From: Ministeria vibrans ATCC 50519
Lineage: Eukaryota; Protista; Filasterea
Reading direction: 5' to 3'
Length of the DNA: 64,000 nucleotides
Assembly (NCBI GenBank): GCA_943704425.1
Contig: CALSCP010000382.1
Coordinates: 1-64,000, forward strand
The notes under the pieces were generated by a model, which worked only from the letters and a program-made list of their open reading frames with translations, was not told the origin of the DNA and did no database searches. Made by a program: the position numbers and the translations under genes. Shown here piece after piece: positions 44,058 to 63,651 of this stretch (position 1 is the stretch's first letter; each line of letters opens with the position of its first letter).

Positions 44058-46151
44058 TTACAAATCTTGACGAAGTATGGACAAGGTGGCGGGATCGAGT
44101 GTACCGTGGCGACGGATCGCGCGGAGGGCAGCACGGCGGACAAGTCCCGCGAGGGTGCTTCCGGTGGCGCCTTGAGGCGCCTTGGAGGCAATGAGGCGCG
44201 GCGTGACGTCGTGGTGGAGCGGCAAGCGACGCGTGAGCACCTGCGCAATGTCGACGAGGTCGAGTGGAGGAGGCGCCCCAATAAGGATGTGCTGCTCGAG
44301 ACGGCCCGGTCGCAGAATGGCACTATCTAGCTGATCGGGTGGGCGATTGGTGCACGCGAGCACAAAGACCCCGGTACTGCGCTGGACACCGTCCATTTCG
44401 TTGAGGAGTTGACTGAGCGCACGCTGTTCGACCGAGGTCGCCTCGCCACTGTCGCAGAGGGCGCGCGACCCACATAGCACGTCAATCTCGTCAATGAAGA
44501 CGATACAGGGGGCAACGGCCCGTGCAGCCGCAAACAAACGGCGAACACACGCCTCGGTGTCGCCAACATAGCGCGAGAAGAGCGACGGGGCAGCGACGGG
44601 CAAAAAAGCAGCGCCGCTCTCGGCTGCCGCCGCGTGAGCCATGAGCGTCTTGCCGCAGCCCGATGGCCCGTGCAGCAGGACCCCCGACGGAGGACGCACG
44701 CCGAGACGGCTGTACGCATCGGGTCGCTGCACAGGCCACACGACCAGACGACGCAGTGTCTGCTGGACACTTGCATAGCCCCCGACATCGCTCCAGCTGT
44801 GACGCGGCCGCTCAAAGTCAAATTCAACCAGCTGTGACGGAAGCACTCGTCTGAGCGCCGACTCAACGTAGCACGGGGCGAGCACAGCTTCATTGTCGAG
44901 AAGCGCATCGAGGCGGGCACAACGCACAAGGCGGACCAAGTCGGACGCGACAAAGCCTGATGTGCGCGTGGCAGTCCACGAGACAAGTGACGACAACGAC
45001 GAACACGGTGGTGCTGATGCGTCCGTCTGCACTCCCTCGGTATCCTCAGCGGTGGCGCGTTGAAATAGAGCTGAAAGCATCGTCGCTCGCTGCTGTGTCG
45101 AAGGGGCATGCACGGTGACGGTGGCGTCCAGCGCACCACGCGCACGCAGCGTGCGCGGCAGACGCACAAGCGCATCACCGTCGCAGCTGGCAATGAGGCA
45201 CCAGCGACGCTGGAGCTGCTCGAGCGCTTGTGAAAGCAACTTGAATGCGTCGGGGGACGACTCGACGAGGCGCTCAATGTGGTGTACGAGTAGCAGTGAC
45301 ACGAGCTGTTGGTCGGCGGCGCGACTCACCCGTTTGAGGCACTGTTGCATGCTGTCGACCGAGCAGGGACCCGCCTTGAGCGTTGTCACCGATACATCCG
45401 TGTCATTGTTGCGAGACCGTGCCGCAAGGACATGCTCAATGACTGAGGATTTGCCGGCACCCGGTGGACCAGTCACAAGGATGCCACCTATCGTGAGAGA
45501 CTGGAACGAATGCTTCTCGCCCGCATCGTCCTGCTGCATTGATTGTTGTTGTCGCAGGGCAATGGCCGACTCGAGCATCCCTTGAAACTCTTCACACGGC
45601 CCCTCCAATCCGGCGCGTAATACAGGCGGCGTGGCGGCCGACAGCGACAGCGACGCAAACGACCGCGCCAAGCGTGCGTCGTCGCGCTCCGCCCGCGGCT
45701 CCACGTCGAATCGGGTGTCTTCGTTTGCAAAGGCAATGCGTACCGCAGGCCCGTCGGGGTCGCTTTGAATAGATACTACTTCGATAGGAGGGTGCGGCGG
45801 GCGCAAGATGGTGTGTCCTTGAACAAGGTGCTTGGACGCGAGAAACCGGCGCGTTGCGTCGTCGACGGGCGCCCGTACGACCACCGACGTCGCTGTGGGC
45901 ACGGTCGCGGGGTCCATGTCAAGCACGTCCACGTCCACCGTGCGGCTCGGCACGGCCCCAAGCAGCGACGGGTGGCACAGGGCGTCGGTGCTCGCCAGCA
46001 GTGCACCGCGCCATCGCGGCCACAGAACAAACCGCTGGGCAACGCAGCAGACATAGTCGCGCTCGCCGTCATCTGGCTCGCCTCCAATGCACAACCTCCA
46101 TGGTTCGGTTTCAGTTGAGGGGTCCGCAAAGAGCGAAAGTTTTAAATTCAT
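44058..46151 (-). CDS. Two-domain AAA+ ATPase, CDC48/AFG2 (SPATA5L1-like) family
   Basis: D1 GPPGAGKS with degenerate Walker B; D2 WSDVGG, GVLLHGPSGCGKT, VFIDEID, LLNEMDG, ILRPGRLE; start codon uncertain. Confidence 0.75.
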   Translation of the reverse strand: MNLKLSLFADPSTETEPWRLCIGGEPDDGERDYVCCVAQRFVLWPRWRGALLASTDALCHPSLLGAVPSRTVDVDVLDMDPATVPTATSVVVRAPVDDATRRFLASKHLVQGHTILRPPHPPIEVVSIQSDPDGPAVRIAFANEDTRFDVEPRAERDDARLARSFASLSLSAATPPVLRAGLEGPCEEFQGMLESAIALRQQQSMQQDDAGEKHSFQSLTIGGILVTGPPGAGKSSVIEHVLAARSRNNDTDVSVTTLKAGPCSVDSMQQCLKRVSRAADQQLVSLLLVHHIERLVESSPDAFKLLSQALEQLQRRWCLIASCDGDALVRLPRTLRARGALDATVTVHAPSTQQRATMLSALFQRATAEDTEGVQTDASAPPCSSLSSLVSWTATRTSGFVASDLVRLVRCARLDALLDNEAVLAPCYVESALRRVLPSQLVEFDFERPRHSWSDVGGYASVQQTLRRLVVWPVQRPDAYSRLGVRPPSGVLLHGPSGCGKTLMAHAAAAESGAAFLPVAAPSLFSRYVGDTEACVRRLFAAARAVAPCIVFIDEIDVLCGSRALCDSGEATSVEQRALSQLLNEMDGVQRSTGVFVLACTNRPPDQLDSAILRPGRLEQHILIGAPPPLDLVDIAQVLTRRLPLHHDVTPRLIASKAPQGATGSTLAGLVRRAALRAIRRHGTLDPATLSILRQDL

Positions 46152-46388
46152 ACGAATAAGATTGATCTTTTCTTTACGTAGGCTTGAACGCCTTTTGCCC
46201 TTTTTATTATAACTTAAGATCAATGGGTACTCATTGGGTAGTCACCATGTGTCGTATAAAAATGAATACTACCTGTGCGGATCTAAAAGAACCGTTCTAT
46301 CGTACAGTCTCGACAGTCTGTCGTTTTACAGACCGAAACAGTTTTAAAGTATAATGGAACTAATGGTTAATTTATATCTGTACTTCAT

Positions 46389-55236: not shown

Positions 55237-55526
55237 GTGTTAGTGTATGTGAAGGGGTGGAAAGTTGTTCAAGTGGAAAACGAGAAAAAATGTGAAATTG
55301 ACATCCAACTCGTGAACTTGGAATTACCTCTTTCTTTCGCAAGCGACGCACACGTCGAAAACCGAAACAAGAGATGTCAAATGGGTGAAGTGAGAGGGGA
55401 GACAGTTAGGTGACAGGCGTGGGAGTCATCGGCTTAGGAATGGCGATGACTTGGTCGAAGGAACGCACTTGGAACGCTCAACCCTTCACATTCAGACGGC
55501 CAAATCATAAAAAGGAATTGATTGAT

Positions 55527-58500
55527 TTATTTAACCGAACATGTAATTGCACCGTCAACAAAGGAGAGCAGAAGGGTCTTGCCCTTCATGTTAGGCTGAA
55601 CAATCACACGTGACAGCACATTGACACAGTCTTGCTGGACCTTGCGCTTGAGCTGGCGCGCACCAAAACGTGGGTCAAACCCATCGGTGCAAATGTGCAC
55701 AAGTAGCGACTCGTCCCAGTCGAGGCTGAGCGATCGCGCCACAAACGCCTGTGTCTTGGCCACACGTCGCAGTTGAATCTCAACAATCTTCTTGAGCACC
55801 TTCCCACCCAGGGGCAGGAAGGGCACTACAGCATCAAGTCGCTCGACAAACTCGGCACGGAAAAACTTGCGCACCTGCGGCAGCAACAATTGCTCGAGTT
55901 CCTCACGATCGAGATCAACTTCCTGATCCACGTCCAACGACGACGACGACAACGACGAAGAGGAGGACGTCTTCGTCGTAGTAGTAGTTGAGGTGGTGGC
56001 CTTTTTCGCAACTGGCTTGTCGTTGTCGTCGCTATTGACACGCACCAATCGCTCAACAAGAGCCATGTCGGCACCCACCACCGAATCGACAGCAGTGCCT
56101 TCGCGAAACAACACAAAGGTGGGCACTGACGTGACACCGGCCGTGGCTGCCAGCACGTCGCATTTATCAATGTCCGCCCGGGCATACACCACATTGCCTA
56201 GCTGAGACTCGGCAAGTGCATCAAACGCAGGCGCAACACGCTCACATGGCCCACACCACGACGCACAAAAGTCAACAAGCATCAGACGCGAGCCGGCCTG
56301 ACGTGCACACTCGCGAAAGTCATCCAACGAGTGGATCACCCGCACCGTCTCTTTCACAGCCTTCTTGTCCTTGGAACTGCCGCTCTTCTTCGACGCACTC
56401 GCACCACGACCACCGCCGGCAGCGGATGCGCTGGCAAACTTGGACGTGTCCTTGAGTAGCGCGTCCATGGAGCTCTTGGCGGCACGACGATGGCGCCCTT
56501 CCTCAATGCGCTTGTACAGCACATCCGCACCTAGATTGGACGTCATGAAGAAGATGCCGTTGCGACAGTTGACCCGTCGCCCCGTCGCATCCGACACGTG
56601 ACCTATCACAAAAAACAATGAATACAAGTCCAACAACACCATTGATGCGCTGCAGCGCAACCAAAGTCATTCGTACCTTCATCAAAGACCTGCAAGAGAA
56701 TATCAAAAACACGCGGGTGGGCCTTCTCCACTTCGTCGAAAAGCACCGCCGAGTACGCTCGCTTGCGTAGCGCCTCTGTCAGCTGGCCACCGTCGTCAGA
56801 GCCCACATAACCCGGAGGACTAAACACAGGGAAATTTATAAAGAGTACAAAAACAAAAAAAAGTAATATTTGTTACCTTCCAATCATACGCGAGATACTC
56901 TGTTGCTCTTGATACTCACTCATGTCCAGCCGGATAAACGCCTGATCCGTGTCAAACAGCTGCTCCGCCACTGCCTTGACCAGCTGTACACAACCAAGCA
57001 CAAGCACAACAGGTAAAAATAAAGCAAAACAATCATATTAATAATTACTACGTTCGTCTTATATTATACTATTTAAATTATCACTATACCTCGGTCTTTC
57101 CAACGCCAGTGGGACCAACCAGCAAGAAGGAGCCAATGGGACGGTCGGGGTCGCCGAGGCCACAACGGTTGCGGCGGATTGCATCGACGACGGTCTGAAC
57201 GGCAAAAGGTTGGCCCACAACACGCTGCTCGAGGACATCGCCCAGACTCGCAAGACGCTCTAGATCACTCTGCTGCATCTTATTGAGCGGAATTTTGGCG
57301 CGACGCGACACCTCGGCAGCCACATCATCCTCATCGACCTCCGTCTTGCCGTCAATCTCAGCCTTACTCGCCGCCTTGCCCAGTACGTCAATCGCCTTGT
57401 CAGGTAGACGAAGCTCCGTCATATAGCGCGATGTAAGCTCACACGCTGCCAGAATGGCGCCCTGCGTGAAGGAAACGCCATGGCGACGCTGAAAGTGCTC
57501 GCGACGCGCCACCAGAATGTCCACCGTCATGGCCACACTGGGCTCCTCAACAATCACCTCTGCAAACCGCCGCACCATCGCCGCGTCCTTCTCGATATTC
57601 TTCTTGAACTCCTTGTGCGTCGTCGCACCAATCACTCGGAACTCCCCTCGCGACAGCGCGGGCCTGAACAAGTATAGAAAAATAAGTTAAAAAGAAAAAA
57701 AGGAAAAAAAAGGAAAAAAAAAAAGACAATTCAAAATGACGTACTTGAGAATGTTTCCGGCGTCCATGGAGCCCCCACCAGCACCCGCGCCCATCATGGT
57801 GTGCATCTCGTCCAAGAACAAAATGTCACCGTCGCTCTCGCTCATCTCCGCCACAATCTTCTTCATGCGCTCCTCAAACTGTCCGCGATACTGCGTGCCC
57901 GCCACGACTGAACTCATGTCCAGACTGTACACTCGCTTGTGTCGTAGGAACTCAGGCACACGCGCCTGTACAATCCGTACCGCCAGCCCTTCCACCACAT
58001 TCGTCTTGCCAACACCCTACACGGAAACAAAATAAACCGTATTAAATTTCCAAGTGAAGTCGTTGTCTGTTTTTTTATTATTATTAAACGTACCGCCTCA
58101 CCAAGAAGAATGACATTGCTCTTGCCGGCGCGATTAAGCGTCTCAATGATCATCTGCAGCTCAGCGTCGCGTCCAATGGCGTCGTGAATTTTGCTGTCGC
58201 GCGCCAGTTCCGTCAGGTCACGTCCGTGTTCCTTCATCATCTTCATGCGATCGTTTCCCTTGGGCTTCCACGCACCGCTATCCTTGATCGTTTTCTTCAC
58301 CGCTTCATTCAGGGTGACTCCATCAATCGCAAGCGCAGTCAAACTGCCGCCGCCGCCCGACACTGCTGCTGCAGCTCCAATCACACTCGTTGACGCGTCC
58401 TTGTTGTCACCGTCCACTGCACGACCACTCACCGACTGCATGGCGCTCGAGACGGCACTGCGAATCTCATCCGAGGTTAACTTGCGGCTGGCAATGTCGT

Positions 58501-61500
58501 CACCAAGCGCATCGTCCATGTCCGCGCACTCACACGCGAGTCGCTCGAGTTCCTCTTGAAGTCCCTTGAGGTTGAACGAACGATAGTACTGGCCGCGCAG
58601 TGTCGCCAGCGAGCCCTTAAACTCGGCCGTTTTGCGTCGGTCATCCTTGGGCGGATCGAGTTTGACCGTGGCAAACGCTTCGCGCAATCGCTCCACCGGC
58701 GTCTTGTCCTTCTTTCCCTTGCCAAAGCCTCCGCATCCTGAGTCTGCCTCGTCCTCGACAACCTCATCAGGGTACACCAATGAGAAGACAGCCATGGTAC
58801 GCGGTGATTTGCGCATCTGCGTGCGAAACGCATCGAAGAGCTCCTTCGACTTGAAGAGCGTCTCCTCAGCCGCCTCAACATAGATGATGACGGGTTGTGC
58901 ACGGCCAATGCGCTGCCGAAAAACCGACTCAAGCAGCGTCACATACTTGCTAGGCTCACTCTTAAACAGATCGGCCACCAACACAATGGTCTGTGCGCCA
59001 AAGCGGTTGGCCAGTCCCTGGCCAACCGCACGATGGTACAAGTGCGTGCCGTCGTCGGGCGGGCCCTCCAGCAGCAGGAATCGGTCGTACGTCTGCATGC
59101 GCTCCGAGTGTTCACTCACCAAGAACAGCGAACCGGTTCCTGTGAATCAAAGAAAAAGAGAGAGGAAAGAGAGGAAAGAGAGGAAAGAGAGGAAAGAGAG
59201 GAAAGAGAGGAAAGAGAGAGTGATAAAAAGTTAAAAAAAAACATAATAATAATAATAATAAAAATAATAAAAATAATAATAATAATAATACCAATAAGAG
59301 TGTTGTGAGACTCGGCGGAAATGTAGTAGGGAAAGTCGGGACCAAGGGTGATGGTTTCTGCCTCGTCGAGAAGCGAGCTCCACCACTCGTGCTGCTTCTC
59401 GCTTGCTTCGCGGTCAAGAGCCTCCTGCACGCGTTCCATCACTTGCTTGAGCGCACTCGTCGTCAGGACGATCTTGTTGTTGTCGGTGTCGCAATCTGAA
59501 CCACTGGCACCCTCGGGTTGCACGGGGGTCGACGAGGCCGATACCACAGCAGTACCGACAGCGGAGGCGGCGGTCGTAGTCGTAAGTGTCGAAGAGTCAC
59601 TGTTGAGATCACCATGGATGGCAGCGGCCACAGCAGCAACCGCCGCTTGTTCGCTATCCACCTGACTCATGGCGGACTCTTGAAGGCGAACAGTGGTGCG
59701 GATGATTTCGGGAAGTCGCGAGGCAAAGCGCGTGTCGCAGGCCATTCGATTGACGAGCTCGTCCTCAGTGGCGTGCTCCTCGATAATCATGTGATGGGAC
59801 AGAGCCAAGCGCAACTGGACGCGTGCAACTCGTTTGTCCCATATCTTAGCATCGGCCACCATGCGATCGCTCCACGCCGCAAACGCGCTCACGTTCACAT
59901 CGGCTGAGGGTGCGGTGAGCTTGAGCTTGCGACAGGCGGCCGTCGACGAGTCGCCCGCATCCTCGTCTTCCGACACCTCTTCCTCCTCAGCCTGACCAAA
60001 CATGCCAAAGGGACGTCCACGATTACGCATTTTGCCTTTGCCACGACGCACATTTCGACGTCCACCAAACGCCCCGTCGTCGTCGTTGTCGTCGTCGCTC
60101 TTGGACTCGTCCGAGACAGTCGACGAGAAGACAATGGGAACGCCGGTGGGAAGGGTCGCCCAGGCACGCAGCGCGTCGATGTAGCCCTTGAAAGTCGATG
60201 CGTTCTCGTGGAGTTGAGGCACATGGACAACACATGGCGCAATCTCATGATCGTTGAGCACCTCACGGAGTGCATTGAACACGGTGCGTTCGGGACTCGA
60301 TGTCCTCGGCTTCGTCTCCTGCTGCTGGTTGAACATGCCGTTGTTGCTGGAGATGCACTCGGGGCGAACACGGCTGCGCGGACGAATGCCCGGCAAGGTG
60401 AGATTGTAGGTACCGTCGTCGTTGACCTTAGACACGCTCCCCGACATGCCGTCTGTAGTGCGGATCTGGTCGCCGACGGCAAAGGCGTTGCGGCCCTTAA
60501 AGCCAGGCTTGACAAGCGCAAGCAGTTCGGCAATATTGAGACGGAGAAGACGACGGGTGCTTCGCTGGGCGGCAATGGCATCGACAATCTTCTCGTGGCA
60601 CAGAGCTGAGCCTACGGGTCCCTCAAGGCGCAGTACGGCAACGTCAAAGCCGGCAAGATGTTGAAAGCGATCTTGTGTGGTCGTTGCGGTGTCGTCGGTG
60701 GAGTCGCTATTTTTCTTAGACAAGCCTTGCAAGCATGCCGTAGTCCACGCATCAAGCTGATTCGCCAGCTCGGCCTTGATGGGGTAGGCAAACGTAGAGT
60801 CGCGAAGCACAGCCGATATGAGTGCACTGCTGTCCTCCTTGGAAGTGGCGTCGTCGCTGTCGTCGTCCGATGACACGACGTCGGTGATGGCCGCGCGAAT
60901 GACCTTGACAAGACGATTGTGCAGTTCCTTCTTGGAGCTTGCCACACTGGTGCTGGTACTTGAGGATCCCAGAGAATCGCGCAACAGCTCGGCATCAAGC
61001 AGGAGATTGCCTTCGTCGTCGTACTCGACTGCGTCCTTGTCGCGCTCGTGCTGGCTGCTCAAGGCCATATTGAGAACGCGACGGAGCTCGTGCACCGACA
61101 GCTTCTTGTGGGTGATGCAAAATGGAAGCGGTGCATCATGCTCAGCATCATCGTCATTGCTGTGCGTCACCGCGCAGGGCTTAAGAGCCACCTTGGTCAA
61201 CATAAGAATGTCACGCAAACGACGGCAGTTACCCACGCGTTGCATGCGACGCTTCTCCTCTTCGCAAAAGCTCTTCCACGCGCGCTGATCCTCCTTCTTC
61301 TTGGCCGCCAGCACCGTTACGATGTCTGCCAGTGGCTCTACGGACGTGTCTACACTGGACGAGACGGGTTCCTCGGCCTTTTTCTGATCCGAGCCCTCTT
61401 CGTCGCTGTGGTCGATGCTCTTCCCATCGCCCTTGTCATCGCTCTTGTCCCCCTCTGCTTCGTCTTTCTCTTTCTGCTTCTTCTTCTCCTCCTCCTCGTT

Positions 61501-63651
61501 GTCGTCCTTCTTCTCGGTCGGTGCTGCACCAAAACTGAATCCAGAAGACACGGAAGCGCTAGGTGCTCCAAAACCGCCGCCACTCGTGCTTGATGCTGGT
61601 GTACCAAACATTGATGGAGCCCCGAATCCGCCACCTCCAGCACTGCCAAACGGACTGGGTTTGGCCGCACCAAAAGTGCCGTTCATGGAGTTGTTGCTGC
61701 TGGGTGCGCCAAAGGAAGATGTACCGGCATCAACACTAGAAGTGCCTGAGAGCGTCTTGAGCAGCGATGTAACCCATGACACACTGGAAAGAGTGTGTGA
61801 CGCAAACGGAATGCACATGTTGCGCGCATTGAGCTGCTCGCCGAGTGTGGTGCGGAAGCCGTCGTGGCGGAGGAGTGCCGTAAAGGTTGGTGGTAGGTAA
61901 AGCACAAAGACGTGTTTGTCGACAATGTCGGAGTTGTTCTGAAGCGACAGATCGACGGAGCGCATGAGGGCACGGGCACACGCACGCACATACTTGTCGT
62001 CGGCATTGGCCGAGCCCAGTCCCTCAGTCTCGGCCTTGTCAGGTGCCGTCGCAGCGCCACTGACGCCTGCGTCGTCGTCCGAGTCGTCCGAGTCACTGTC
62101 TTCGTCGTCGTCGTCGTCGTTGTTGTTGCCCAGCATGCCGAATCCACCAGCATTGTTGTTCTTTTTGCCCTTCTTTTTGTTTGCCATCGTTCCAAAGCCA
62201 CCTCCACCACCAAATGGAGCGCCAAAGGAAAACGCGTTATTGTTGTTATTATTGTTGTCGTTGTCATTGCTGTTGTCAGTGTCTGCGGCCGTCGAGTTGT
62301 CCGCCACGGCGTCTTCGGCGTTGGTAGCGCGCGCGAGACGACGTCGACGCGCCGACTTGAGGACCTTTGCGTCGAGTGTGCCCTCGAGCAGTGAAAAGAG
62401 AGTCTCGGATGCAGTGGACGCGACAGTGACAAAGGCAGCGTGAGCATGGGTGGCGGCTGCCTCGGCGAGGGAACAAAGATATACGTCGGCGTAGGCGGGT
62501 CCCTTGAGCACGCACACGCGTGGGTTTTTGACTGTGAGATCGCTAAATTGGCGCGCCAAGTGACGACCGTGCGCCGTGGTGCGGTACAGCGTCACATCAC
62601 TCACAAAGGTGGAGATTTGCTCGACAACCTTGTCCGAGGGAGCTGATGGAGTGAGTTTGGCAAAGACGGCGGTAGGTTTACTCGTGAGCGTGATGGCGTG
62701 AGACTCACCAAGCGCGTCGACGACCTTTTGTTCAAAGTCTTCTGTGTCCGACGCAGGCCTGGCGCCCGTTGACGAGGGGGTGAGCGAAGAAGCATCCGAT
62801 GCTGTTGCGAGTGAGGTCGACAGTGGGGCGTCGTCAGGGATCGCCTGGCTTGACACGACGACCACTTCGGGCGTTGGAGCTGCGCTCGCAGCTTTAAAAA
62901 CGTTTGCAGCGGCAACGGCGGCGTCGCTATCGGCCTGAATATGGTTGATACTGGCCATATCGAGGGCAGTGGCGGTAGTGTCGGTGATTGCGGCGGCGGC
63001 CATATCCAAAGGATTGGCTGACACTTGACGGACAGCCGGCGAGTTGGACTGAGACGCGATTGCGGCGGCGGCCATATCCAAAGGATTGGCTGACACTTGA
63101 CGGACAGCCGGCGAGTTGGACTGAGACGCGGTTGCGGCGGCGGCCACTTTGGCGGCCATCGAGATGGACGTGGGGCGTTTGCGCAGGCCGTCCTTTTCGC
63201 CAGGAGTCTCAAGCAGATGGAACTCGGCGACGTCGACGGACGGTGGTGCGAAGTGCTTGGCTTTCAGCAGAGGCTCCTGGCGTTTGGCGACGCGCCAGTA
63301 CTCGCCGTTGATCAGACGCAGGAAGGCAAACGAGACTGGCACATCCTCTTCGTCCATCTGCTCGGCGAGGCGAGTGCGCACTTCGAGAAGAGTGTCCTGC
63401 AAACGTTTGCCAAACGCGATAAAAAAAAAACATTTTTTTTTTCGGGTGTCAAGCAAGAAAAAGGGGGAAAGAAAATGGCGATCTACCTGAGCCATGCATC
63501 GAACAAAGGCAATGTTGGCGTTGGCGACCTTGAGGACAGTCTCAGCGGGGGCGGCACGTCCAGGAAATTGGGCGGCCGGCACAATGTGAACCTTGAAGTC
63601 GCTGAGTTGCTCGCTCAGCTGTCTCTGCAGCGACGTGGGTCGGTTCGACAT
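55527..63651 (-). CDS. Giant Clp/Hsp100 AAA+ protein (~2,500 aa): SPATA1-like N-domain, three degenerate AAA modules, ClpA-like NBD1-NBD2 with inserted thioredoxin
   Basis: NBD1: IGRDAE, GEA|[45 protein letters not shown]2: [51 protein letters not shown] thioredoxin. Upstream ORF 59116..63651 joins in frame through GT-AG intron 59140-59291. Confidence 0.8.
59157..59220. repeat. Intronic 9-bp tandem repeat (GAGAGGAAA)n
   Basis: About six direct copies. Confidence 0.9.
62987..63143. repeat. 72-bp coding tandem duplication ([24 protein letters not shown] x2)
   Basis: Two near-identical in-frame copies. Confidence 0.9.

Follow-up and report, generated by a model that had tools for sequence, protein, structure and literature searches.

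The question raised by the minus strand between positions 63651 and 55527 of the window analysed here, a stretch of 64,000 nucleotides of Ministeria vibrans ATCC 50519 (assembly GCA_943704425.1, contig CALSCP010000382.1, positions 1 to 64,000), is whether a single gene encodes a giant Clp/Hsp100 machine of a kind not described before, and what such a machine might do. A preliminary description, drawn up from the DNA alone, had outlined a protein of about 2,500 residues that consists of a SPATA1-like domain, three pseudo-AAA modules, a ClpA-type motor and a thioredoxin. The finding is real and unusual and represents a Clp/Hsp100 type of novel design: according to the profile searches, a ClpB-related double-ring motor lacking both the M-domain and the Clp_N domain harbors a thioredoxin within its second nucleotide-binding domain (NBD2), and the orphan sequence in front of this motor very probably belongs to the same protein.

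The reading frame is divided into seven exons, E1 to E7 (Table 1), and database searches were carried out exon by exon (E1 as 59293-63651, E2 as 58094-59137), which lowers the sensitivity for domains that are split by introns, namely module 3, the N-terminal domain and NBD2. Pfam families were assigned to E3 (AAA), E4 (AAA_lid_9), E6 (AAA_2) and E7 (AAA_2 and ClpB_D2-small). The first nucleotide-binding domain (NBD1) begins at about position 58252 in E2, residues 264-348 of which correspond to positions 119-203 of the ClpB profile TIGR03346; the domain contains the motifs GVGKT, LDE, YRG, GATT and RRF and is matched by Pfam AAA and by positions 204-399 of the same profile. NBD2 is recognized by AAA_2 (PF07724, 69 and 34 bits) and by PF10431 (49.7 bits), and the GYVG pore loop, the sensor-1 asparagine, the arginine finger and the GAR motif are all present. 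Hence, every element that had been listed for the two nucleotide-binding domains, i.e. Walker A and B, the pore loops YRG and GYVG, the RRF finger and the GAR sensor, was found. Based on these intact motifs, the C-terminal part of about 750 residues is predicted to form a catalytically competent double-ring AAA+ motor.

The same searches indicate which parts of a canonical Hsp100 protein are missing. E4 aligns with E. coli ClpA in one continuous stretch (309-503), whereas the alignment with ClpB falls into two stretches (293-406 and 517-603, 110 residues being skipped in T. thermophilus ClpB), as does that with ClpC, where 55 residues are skipped. The M-domain is therefore absent and LPDKAID leads nearly straight to NBD2, as had been noted before. 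Clp_N (PF02861) gave no match in any exon at E-values up to 10, nor anywhere in the genome, and the match of the gene to the ClpB profile begins only at position 119. This agrees with the earlier claim that the small Clp N-domain is replaced by long other sequence, as about 1,750 residues precede the motor. TIGR03346 was the top profile for all six exon pieces, with a sum of 595 bits compared to 491 bits for ClpA, a sum that is far below the equivalog cut-off of TIGR03346 (1,232 bits). As a control, a genuine ClpA from a Defluviitaleaceae metagenome-assembled genome, the lone match from a contig scan with E4 (L041), scored 976 bits with the ClpA profile and 706 bits with that of ClpB. Judged by these profiles, the motor is a relative of ClpB and not an equivalog, and the simplest reading is that of a ClpB-type protein which has lost its M- and N-domains. 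The coiled-coil M-domain is the docking and repression arm for Hsp70. From its loss it may fairly be inferred that the protein is an Hsp70-independent unfoldase, and an active unfoldase without M-domain appears probable from the motifs that are retained. The cytosolic or nuclear location given in the preliminary description is putative.

The most unusual element resides in E7, in which the Pfam domains are arranged in the order AAA_2, Thioredoxin and ClpB_D2-small. Residues 2-34 of E7 correspond to residues 699-731 of E. coli ClpB and residues 221-346 to residues 723-847, and the sequence in between has no counterpart in ClpB. Within this insert, residues 86-188 of E7 align end to end with 105-residue eukaryotic structures of the Trx1 type (E-value 5e-22), with WCGPC at residue 115 and VPT at residue 159, and both flanks are low-complexity linkers of about 40-50 residues, which are rich in Ala/Ser/Gly/Lys and Thr/Ser. 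The thioredoxin module proposed in the preliminary description is thus indeed present, its position being not the end of the protein but the interior of NBD2, between AAA_2 and ClpB_D2-small. Due to WCGPC, the cis-proline and the matches to Trx1-type proteins, the domain looks catalytically active. The match of the ClpA profile stops at position 582 in E6 and resumes at position 629 in E7, the insert starts directly after the sensor-1 asparagine, and no IGL or IGF tripeptide occurs between this asparagine and ClpA profile position 629. In terms of the alignment, the thioredoxin occupies the site of the IGL helix-loop-helix by which ClpA docks to ClpP, at the base of the D2 ring. Since the IGL/F loop appears to be replaced by the thioredoxin, docking to ClpP is not expected.

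In comparison to ClpB, Hsp104 and Hsp78, the protein shares the two AAA+ rings with GVGKT, YRG, RRF, GYVG and GAR, the AAA_lid_9 and D2-small domains and the best-scoring profile; however, it has neither M-domain nor Clp_N, it carries a 186-residue thioredoxin insert in NBD2, and about 1,750 extra residues are located in front of the motor. With ClpA it has in common that NBD1 is directly joined to NBD2 without an M-domain and that an additional element is placed at the IGL-loop site at the D2 base, but here the element is a thioredoxin instead of the IGL/F helix-loop-helix, and Clp_N is missing. The designation as a ClpA-type motor consequently holds for the layout and not for the sequence, for which the ClpB profile is ahead of the ClpA profile in six out of six exon pieces. 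The D2 part of the gene is also matched by Skd3 (human CLPB) with an E-value of about 1e-8. Skd3 is a eukaryotic Hsp100 relative which likewise lacks the M-domain and bears a non-Clp module at its N-terminus; it differs by its ankyrin repeats, by having only one AAA+ ring and by the lack of a thioredoxin.

The combination of a Clp D2 and a thioredoxin appears to be exceedingly rare. When 1.84 billion representative proteins were searched with E7 using HMMER, it was observed in only two fragments, P0001 from the organism itself and P0088 from a relative, and the sequence clusters of both are singletons. The other top matches that were checked are not orthologues; they are multi-thioredoxin proteins similar to protein disulfide isomerases without AAA_2. 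The fragment of the relative displays AAA_2, a linker and a WCGPC thioredoxin in the same order at 70% protein identity, with a linker of about 25 residues compared to about 50 residues here. At the corresponding locus (L002; contig JAOQFC010095629.1 of GCA_025491055.1), introns follow FDEV and CGPCTKV, and none is found at the sites of the E5/E6 or E6/E7 junctions, from which it follows that introns have moved within the gene between close relatives. Targeted literature searches yielded no Hsp100 with a built-in thioredoxin, and surveys of eukaryotic Hsp100 proteins do not mention one. Thus, the architecture, which the preliminary description had not recognized, has no equivalent in the databases and the literature searched, and we did not find it catalogued in many eukaryotes.

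Whether all of this belongs to one gene depends on the exon structure, for which the splice sites were placed by reading the DNA by hand. An open reading frame (ORF) of 1,511 codons starting from the ATG at 63651 is followed by five shorter ORFs on the minus strand of 55527-63651, and joining the seven exons via six GT..AG introns results in a frame of 7,578 nt, that is, 2,525 codons plus TAA. The codons that are split across exon joins read GGA, AAG, AGT and GGT (Gly, Lys, Ser and Gly), and no stop is among them. The six introns have lengths of 57-152 nt, start with GTA and end with AG, and their GC content is 0.22-0.42 compared to 0.52-0.60 in the exons. The GC content at third codon positions (GC3) is even over all exons (0.60-0.71), and also over all 150-codon blocks of E1 (0.58-0.74). 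Upstream of the ATG (63651-63649), the DNA is AT-rich and contains in-frame stops, and the nearest further coding-looking piece on the strand of the gene lies about 1 kb away. The window contains four runs of N, all of which are located outside 55527-63651. The exons, the frame and the gap-free span of the preliminary description, in which ORFs had been joined through short GT-AG introns, are thereby borne out. Across introns 2-6, the match to TIGR03346 continues unbroken from exon to exon (151-202, 204-294, 296-399 and, further on, 611-645, 647-693), and each split codon accounts for exactly one profile position that is skipped. The independent environmental contig L001 (JGI sample, 1,231 nt, 99.8-100% identical) lacks introns 5 and 6: it opens with the final 8 nt of E5 fused to E6, and 56676-56603 are missing from it; intron 5 is, in addition, absent from the genomic DNA of the related species (L002). 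The gene is expressed and spliced in this environmental sample. Such a locus might in principle be a chimera of the assembly or a pseudogene in decay, as its unusual size and the orphan, low-complexity nature of the N-terminal region might suggest. However, this appears exceedingly improbable, as the span is devoid of N gaps, two DNA sequencing runs contain 0.98-0.99 of its words contiguously, the frame stays open over 2,525 codons at an even GC3 and with its catalytic motifs preserved, and the product is expressed and spliced.

Within E1, the segment 63397-63486 is the part of lowest GC content (0.32-0.37 in 60-nt windows) and translates into poly-F/K junk, and a probable additional in-frame intron is therefore placed here (63486-63397). 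Its removal would result in a protein of about 2,495 residues, the N-terminal domain of which would be 30 residues shorter than initially assumed.

The crucial junction is intron 1, which, on in-silico grounds, appears to be the point of fusion between the orphan region and the Clp part. Read upstream from the intron 1 acceptor, the frame of E2 meets a stop after three codons, and the first methionine of E2 is located inside module 3, which shares one open frame with the start of NBD1. Two elements that lie within a single exon in module 2 recur here in unchanged order, one at the end of E1 and the other at the start of E2 (..DRFLLLEGP..); the scores of the two matches were reached by 25 of 500 shuffles for the end of E1 and by 10 of 500 for the start of E2. 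In five RNA-type runs, which come from two studies, 0.85-0.88 of the 31-mers sampled from 55401-61400 are present. By our own arithmetic, a share of 0.857-0.878 would be expected for RNA of both halves from which all six introns have been spliced out; in two DNA runs the share is 0.98-0.99. Based on the composition and boundaries of intron 1, the frame that is kept, the closure of the E2 frame, the colinearity with module 2 and the shares in the RNA-type runs, we consider it very probable that 63651-55527 is one gene giving rise to one protein. The alternative is that of two genes, in which E1 would encode an orphan low-complexity protein that ends at the stop 59116-59118 in a retained 'intron', and a separate Clp motor of about 1,060 residues with its thioredoxin would start from the first methionine of E2. 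An in-frame methionine is indeed available at E2 residue 13, the direct RNA evidence is confined to introns 5 and 6, and no homologue was found for E1, let alone one that ties it to any Clp protein. Nevertheless, such an arrangement is very unlikely: the segment 59140-59291 resembles the other five introns in composition and boundaries and leaves no room for a terminator and a promoter, its splicing preserves the frame, each of the five RNA-type runs covers the exons of both halves in full, and the second protein would have to begin partway through an AAA-like module, the upstream motif of which lies at the end of E1. Apart from this question, intron 1 harbors a CT-rich heptamer-like repeat (window positions 59153-59222).

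Searches with the N-terminal region revealed neither a Pfam family nor a relative in the PDB, a paralogue or a homologue in the databases. The N-terminal domain, previously described as SPATA1-like, matched no Pfam family, and the leads from two Atlas searches were weak and ubiquitin-like (0.76-0.82). Homologue searches with the 1,511-aa ORF, with E2 and with residues 1225-1453 of E1 returned no real relative, the candidate lists (8,000) being probably swamped by low-complexity sequence and the length window being such that it may exclude relatives. When metagenomes were scanned with E2 and with the 60 residues that close E1, no homologue emerged either; a lone match, L034, turned out to be a chance match in a bacterial Nuo operon. 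Module 3 and the N-terminal domain have no paralogue in the same genome, and sequence searches of the PDB with the modules gave chance matches only.

Ten classic AAA domains encoded in this genome were combined into a profile, with which the modules were compared by hhalign. Module 3 reached a score of 32 (probability 46%; shuffles at most 17.5); its alignment is in register between the P-loop strand and Walker B, 62 columns being covered at 40% identity. Module 1 reached a score of 25-26 (probability 14%; shuffles at most 17.8), again in register. Module 2 scored 16, no better than shuffles (at most 17.8). Hence, the three pseudo-AAA modules that had been proposed are supported only in part: module 3 displays a weak similarity (score 32), that of module 1 is weaker (25), and module 2 remains at the level of shuffles. 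A match to the classic AAA family PF00004 was not obtained for any of the three at E-values up to 10, and comparisons between the modules did not rise above shuffles, with only short colinear motifs being shared by modules 2 and 3. The GK[ST] of Walker A is missing in the modules (e.g. GPAYADVY for GPPGxGKT), and module 3 has ..IIYVE.. instead of the DE of Walker B. If these are AAA folds, they would be degenerate. An FPYYIS... motif is followed about 35 residues on by the P-loop remnant ..LL.GP.., which lacks the GK[ST] lysine. This may resemble plant AAA ATPases of the At1g02890 type, the degenerate N-terminal AAA-like domain of which starts with FPYY[LI]S. In those proteins, the degenerate domain precedes a classic AAA domain and not a Clp double ring. 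AlphaFold models from single sequences had predicted local distance difference test scores of 39 (E2) and 36 (module 2), which are too low for use.

Module 2 contains, in addition, a beta-rich insert of about 55 residues (60352-60516) with a weak YajC-like Pfam match (E-value 0.0096) and predicted short strands, which may represent a small SH3- or Tudor-like barrel. By eye, modules 2 and 3 share a succession of an acidic run, a short GFG/FG motif and a Lys/Arg-rich run, which comes at a comparable point behind the last core strand. In module 1, a comparable patch of FG and Lys-rich sequence is arranged differently. These patches are located at about 62140-62240, 60000-60075 and 58720-58760 on the minus strand. 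The protein comprises 17 phenylalanine-glycine (FG) dipeptides in total. The main FG tract corresponds to residues 647-707 of E1, and lesser clusters occur at residues 476-504 and 1195-1218. Despite the FG tract, no nucleoporin (Nup) family was matched in Pfam.

What might such a protein do? Hsp100 motors are known to work in two modes, in which the unfolded chain is either passed on to a protease (ClpA, ClpC, ClpX) or released for Hsp70-aided refolding (ClpB, Hsp104). We propose an unfoldase-reductase, i.e. a single ClpB-derived motor of about 2,500 residues with tethered thioredoxins, and would give this model an even chance as an explanation of the whole. The motor would assemble into a hexamer and thread substrates through its axial pore without Hsp70, and its six tethered thioredoxins would surround the exit face, which in ClpAP is the place of ClpP. 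Cysteines of the chain passing through would be reduced there or drawn into mixed disulfides with the thioredoxins, and this might resolve disulfide cross-links that stall translocation or hold oxidised aggregates together. The N-terminal region, which comprises a small domain, charged and FG tracts and at most three degenerate AAA-like modules, might take the place of Clp_N as a platform for substrates, localisation or assembly. That the thioredoxin acts on threaded substrates is a more tentative part of the proposal, and somewhat doubtful when taken by itself. In its boldest form, which we regard as rather unlikely, the protein would stand for an AAA+ class in which the peptidase chamber has been replaced by a ring of six tethered thioredoxins that reduce the chain at the exit, with up to three degenerate AAA tiers and FG tracts setting substrate choice or targeting to condensates or the nuclear pore, and it would be the only, Hsp70-free Hsp100 of the organism.

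Pairs of an unfolding motor and a thioredoxin have been described before. In the PTEX translocon of Plasmodium, TRX2 is an accessory subunit of the HSP101 motor and has been proposed to relieve disulfide blocks (PMC7355975). This system equally pairs an Hsp100 threading motor with a thioredoxin, but TRX2 is a separate subunit that is sub-stoichiometric and dispensable, and the N- and M-domains are retained in HSP101, whereas here the thioredoxin is covalently attached at one per subunit. Similarly, TXNL1 binds to the actively degrading 26S proteasome (PMC12700817), which places a redox-active thioredoxin-like cofactor at a working AAA+ unfolding machine. In contrast to the present protein, TXNL1 acts in trans, on Rpn11 at the entry side, and the proteasomal motor is a single-ring hetero-hexamer that is coupled to a protease.

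Several observations weigh against one gene and against an unfoldase-reductase. The cDNA evidence is confined to introns 5 and 6 and extends neither to intron 1 nor to the putative intron 63486-63397, and the shares in the RNA-type runs fit two co-expressed transcripts as well as a single one. The domains of the N-terminal region rest on weak profile matches, and no homologue of its roughly 1,750 residues was found. Hexamer formation, ATPase activity and reductase activity are predictions from the sequence. Furthermore, the thioredoxin would be placed at the exit face, and a disulfide block is to be expected at the entry, which linkers of about 40-50 residues may not reach. Finally, the lack of other ClpB genes is based on an assembly of 29.7 Mb, which may be incomplete.

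The position of the insert also allows for a different role, in which the thioredoxin would serve as a redox switch rather than act on substrates: oxidation or reduction of CGPC, or a mixed disulfide with D2, would gate ATPase activity, hexamer stability or the pore exit, so that the machine is turned on under oxidative stress. The insert is located between the large and the small subdomain of NBD2, beside sensor-1 and the arginine finger, where its movement could affect ATP hydrolysis, and the loss of the regulatory M-domain makes another control element plausible. However, the long low-complexity linkers, the length of which varies (about 50 residues here and 25 in the relative), suggest free tethering instead of rigid allostery, and the thioredoxin has retained all catalytic hallmarks of a general reductase. 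We thus consider a redox switch quite unlikely.

Another possibility arises from the remaining gene content. The 29.7-Mb assembly contains no second ClpB-like gene, the other AAA_2 matches being HslU and ClpX, and the genome encodes HslU (384 bits with TIGR00390), ClpX and ClpP (contigs C2232, C2677 and C2433). HslU is uncommon in eukaryotes. With no other ClpB-like gene or Clp_N in an assembly in which ClpX, ClpP and HslU are present, and with every exon being closest to ClpB, the protein might be the sole general disaggregase, a diverged and maybe organellar replacement of Hsp104 or Hsp78, and the thioredoxin and the N-terminal region would then be a lineage-specific decoration. This appears very unlikely. 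The M-domain, on which disaggregation by ClpB and Hsp104 depends for its coupling to Hsp70 (see PMC5540906 for the features of the family), is absent here. The thioredoxin insert has been kept in two species despite introns having moved, and the early acidic residues at the N-terminus are, by our own reading, untypical of a presequence.

If the proposed unfoldase-reductase were confirmed, it would represent a third Hsp100 mode, in which unfolding is coupled to disulfide chemistry at the site where proteases dock, and the pairing of motor and thioredoxin, so far seen only as loose partnerships in trans (PTEX-TRX2 and proteasome-TXNL1), would be turned into a natural system to study how disulfide cross-links are handled in threading. 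The site of the ClpP loop might then be regarded as an evolvable port for other enzymes, and the organism might illustrate how a eukaryote manages with a single Hsp100 without M-domain. The orphan extension of 1,750 residues, with its degenerate AAA-like modules and FG tracts, poses a separate puzzle of how such a motor is targeted.

Table 1. Positions of exons, introns and predicted domains of the Clp/Hsp100-type gene within the window
Feature	Position	Strand	Remarks
E1	63651-59292	-	long open frame; contains probable extra intron
E1a, with start codon ATG at 63651-63649	63487-63651	-	55 codons; terminates at CAG|GTAGAT
Probable extra intron in E1	63397-63486	-	90 nt, in frame, stop-free; GTAGAT...TTTGCAG
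E1b, orphan N-terminal region with low-complexity tracts	59292-63396	-	open frame; coding-type GC3
Intron 1	59140-59291	-	152 nt; GTATTA...CACAG; GC 0.25; frame kept (G|GA)
E2, module 3 core, helical linker and NBD1 start	58094-59139	-	module 3 core and NBD1 start in one open frame
Intron 2	58017-58093	-	77 nt; GTACGT..GTGTAG; joins LLGEA|GVGKT
E3, NBD1 core (GVGKT, YRG, LDE)	57745-58016	-	Pfam AAA; ClpB profile 204-294, 132 bits
Intron 3	57664-57744	-	81 nt; split codon AA|G; ClpB profile 294 to 296
E4, NBD1 end (GATT, RRF), AAA_lid_9, LPDKAID, direct link, NBD2 Walker A	57090-57663	-	Pfam, alignments
Intron 4	56984-57089	-	106 nt; GTATAG..GTACAG; phase 0
E5, NBD2	56877-56983	-	ClpB profile 611-645
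Intron 5	56820-56876	-	57 nt; splicing confirmed by cDNA contig L001
E6, NBD2 GYVG pore loop, Walker B FDEVEKAH	56677-56819	-	Pfam AAA_2; ClpB profile 647-693
Intron 6	56603-56676	-	74 nt; splicing confirmed, exactly these bases missing from L001
E7, sensor-1 TSN, thioredoxin insert, Arg finger ERLD, D2-small with GAR (55584-55808), TAA	55527-56602	-	Pfam
N-terminal globular domain	63202-63651	-	interrupted by probable intron; no family match
Ala/Ser-rich tandem repeat	62986-63138	-	two copies of about 26 residues, read from translation
Module 1, weak AAA-like P-loop remnant	61732-62664	-	split by Asn/Asp- and FG-rich insert
FG-repeat tract	61519-61719	-	7 FG dipeptides in 67 residues
Module 2	60067-60819	-	short motif, then ..LRLEGPVGS..; beta-rich insert 60352-60516; colinear with both halves of module 3
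Module 3 start, extreme end of E1	59293-59340	-	resembles module 2 motif; 25/500 shuffles reach score
Module 3 core	58748-59137	-	E2 residues 19-88 align to classic AAA, P-loop to Walker B
Insertion relative to ClpB (linker, thioredoxin, linker)	55941-56498	-	186 residues
Thioredoxin domain, WCGPC and cis-Pro VPT	56037-56345	-	Pfam PF00085, 72 bits (cut-off 23.5)

Two further features were observed in the surroundings of the gene. A (TG)n microsatellite is located in the intergenic DNA upstream of it, beyond the window (about 64,350-64,450 of contig C382, corresponding to about 2700-2790 of L013). About 9 kb from the Clp gene, a separate gene on the minus strand (44058-46223), with an ORF of 721 aa, encodes a classic AAA ATPase, in which PF00004 is matched with 134.6 bits at 44277-44681.

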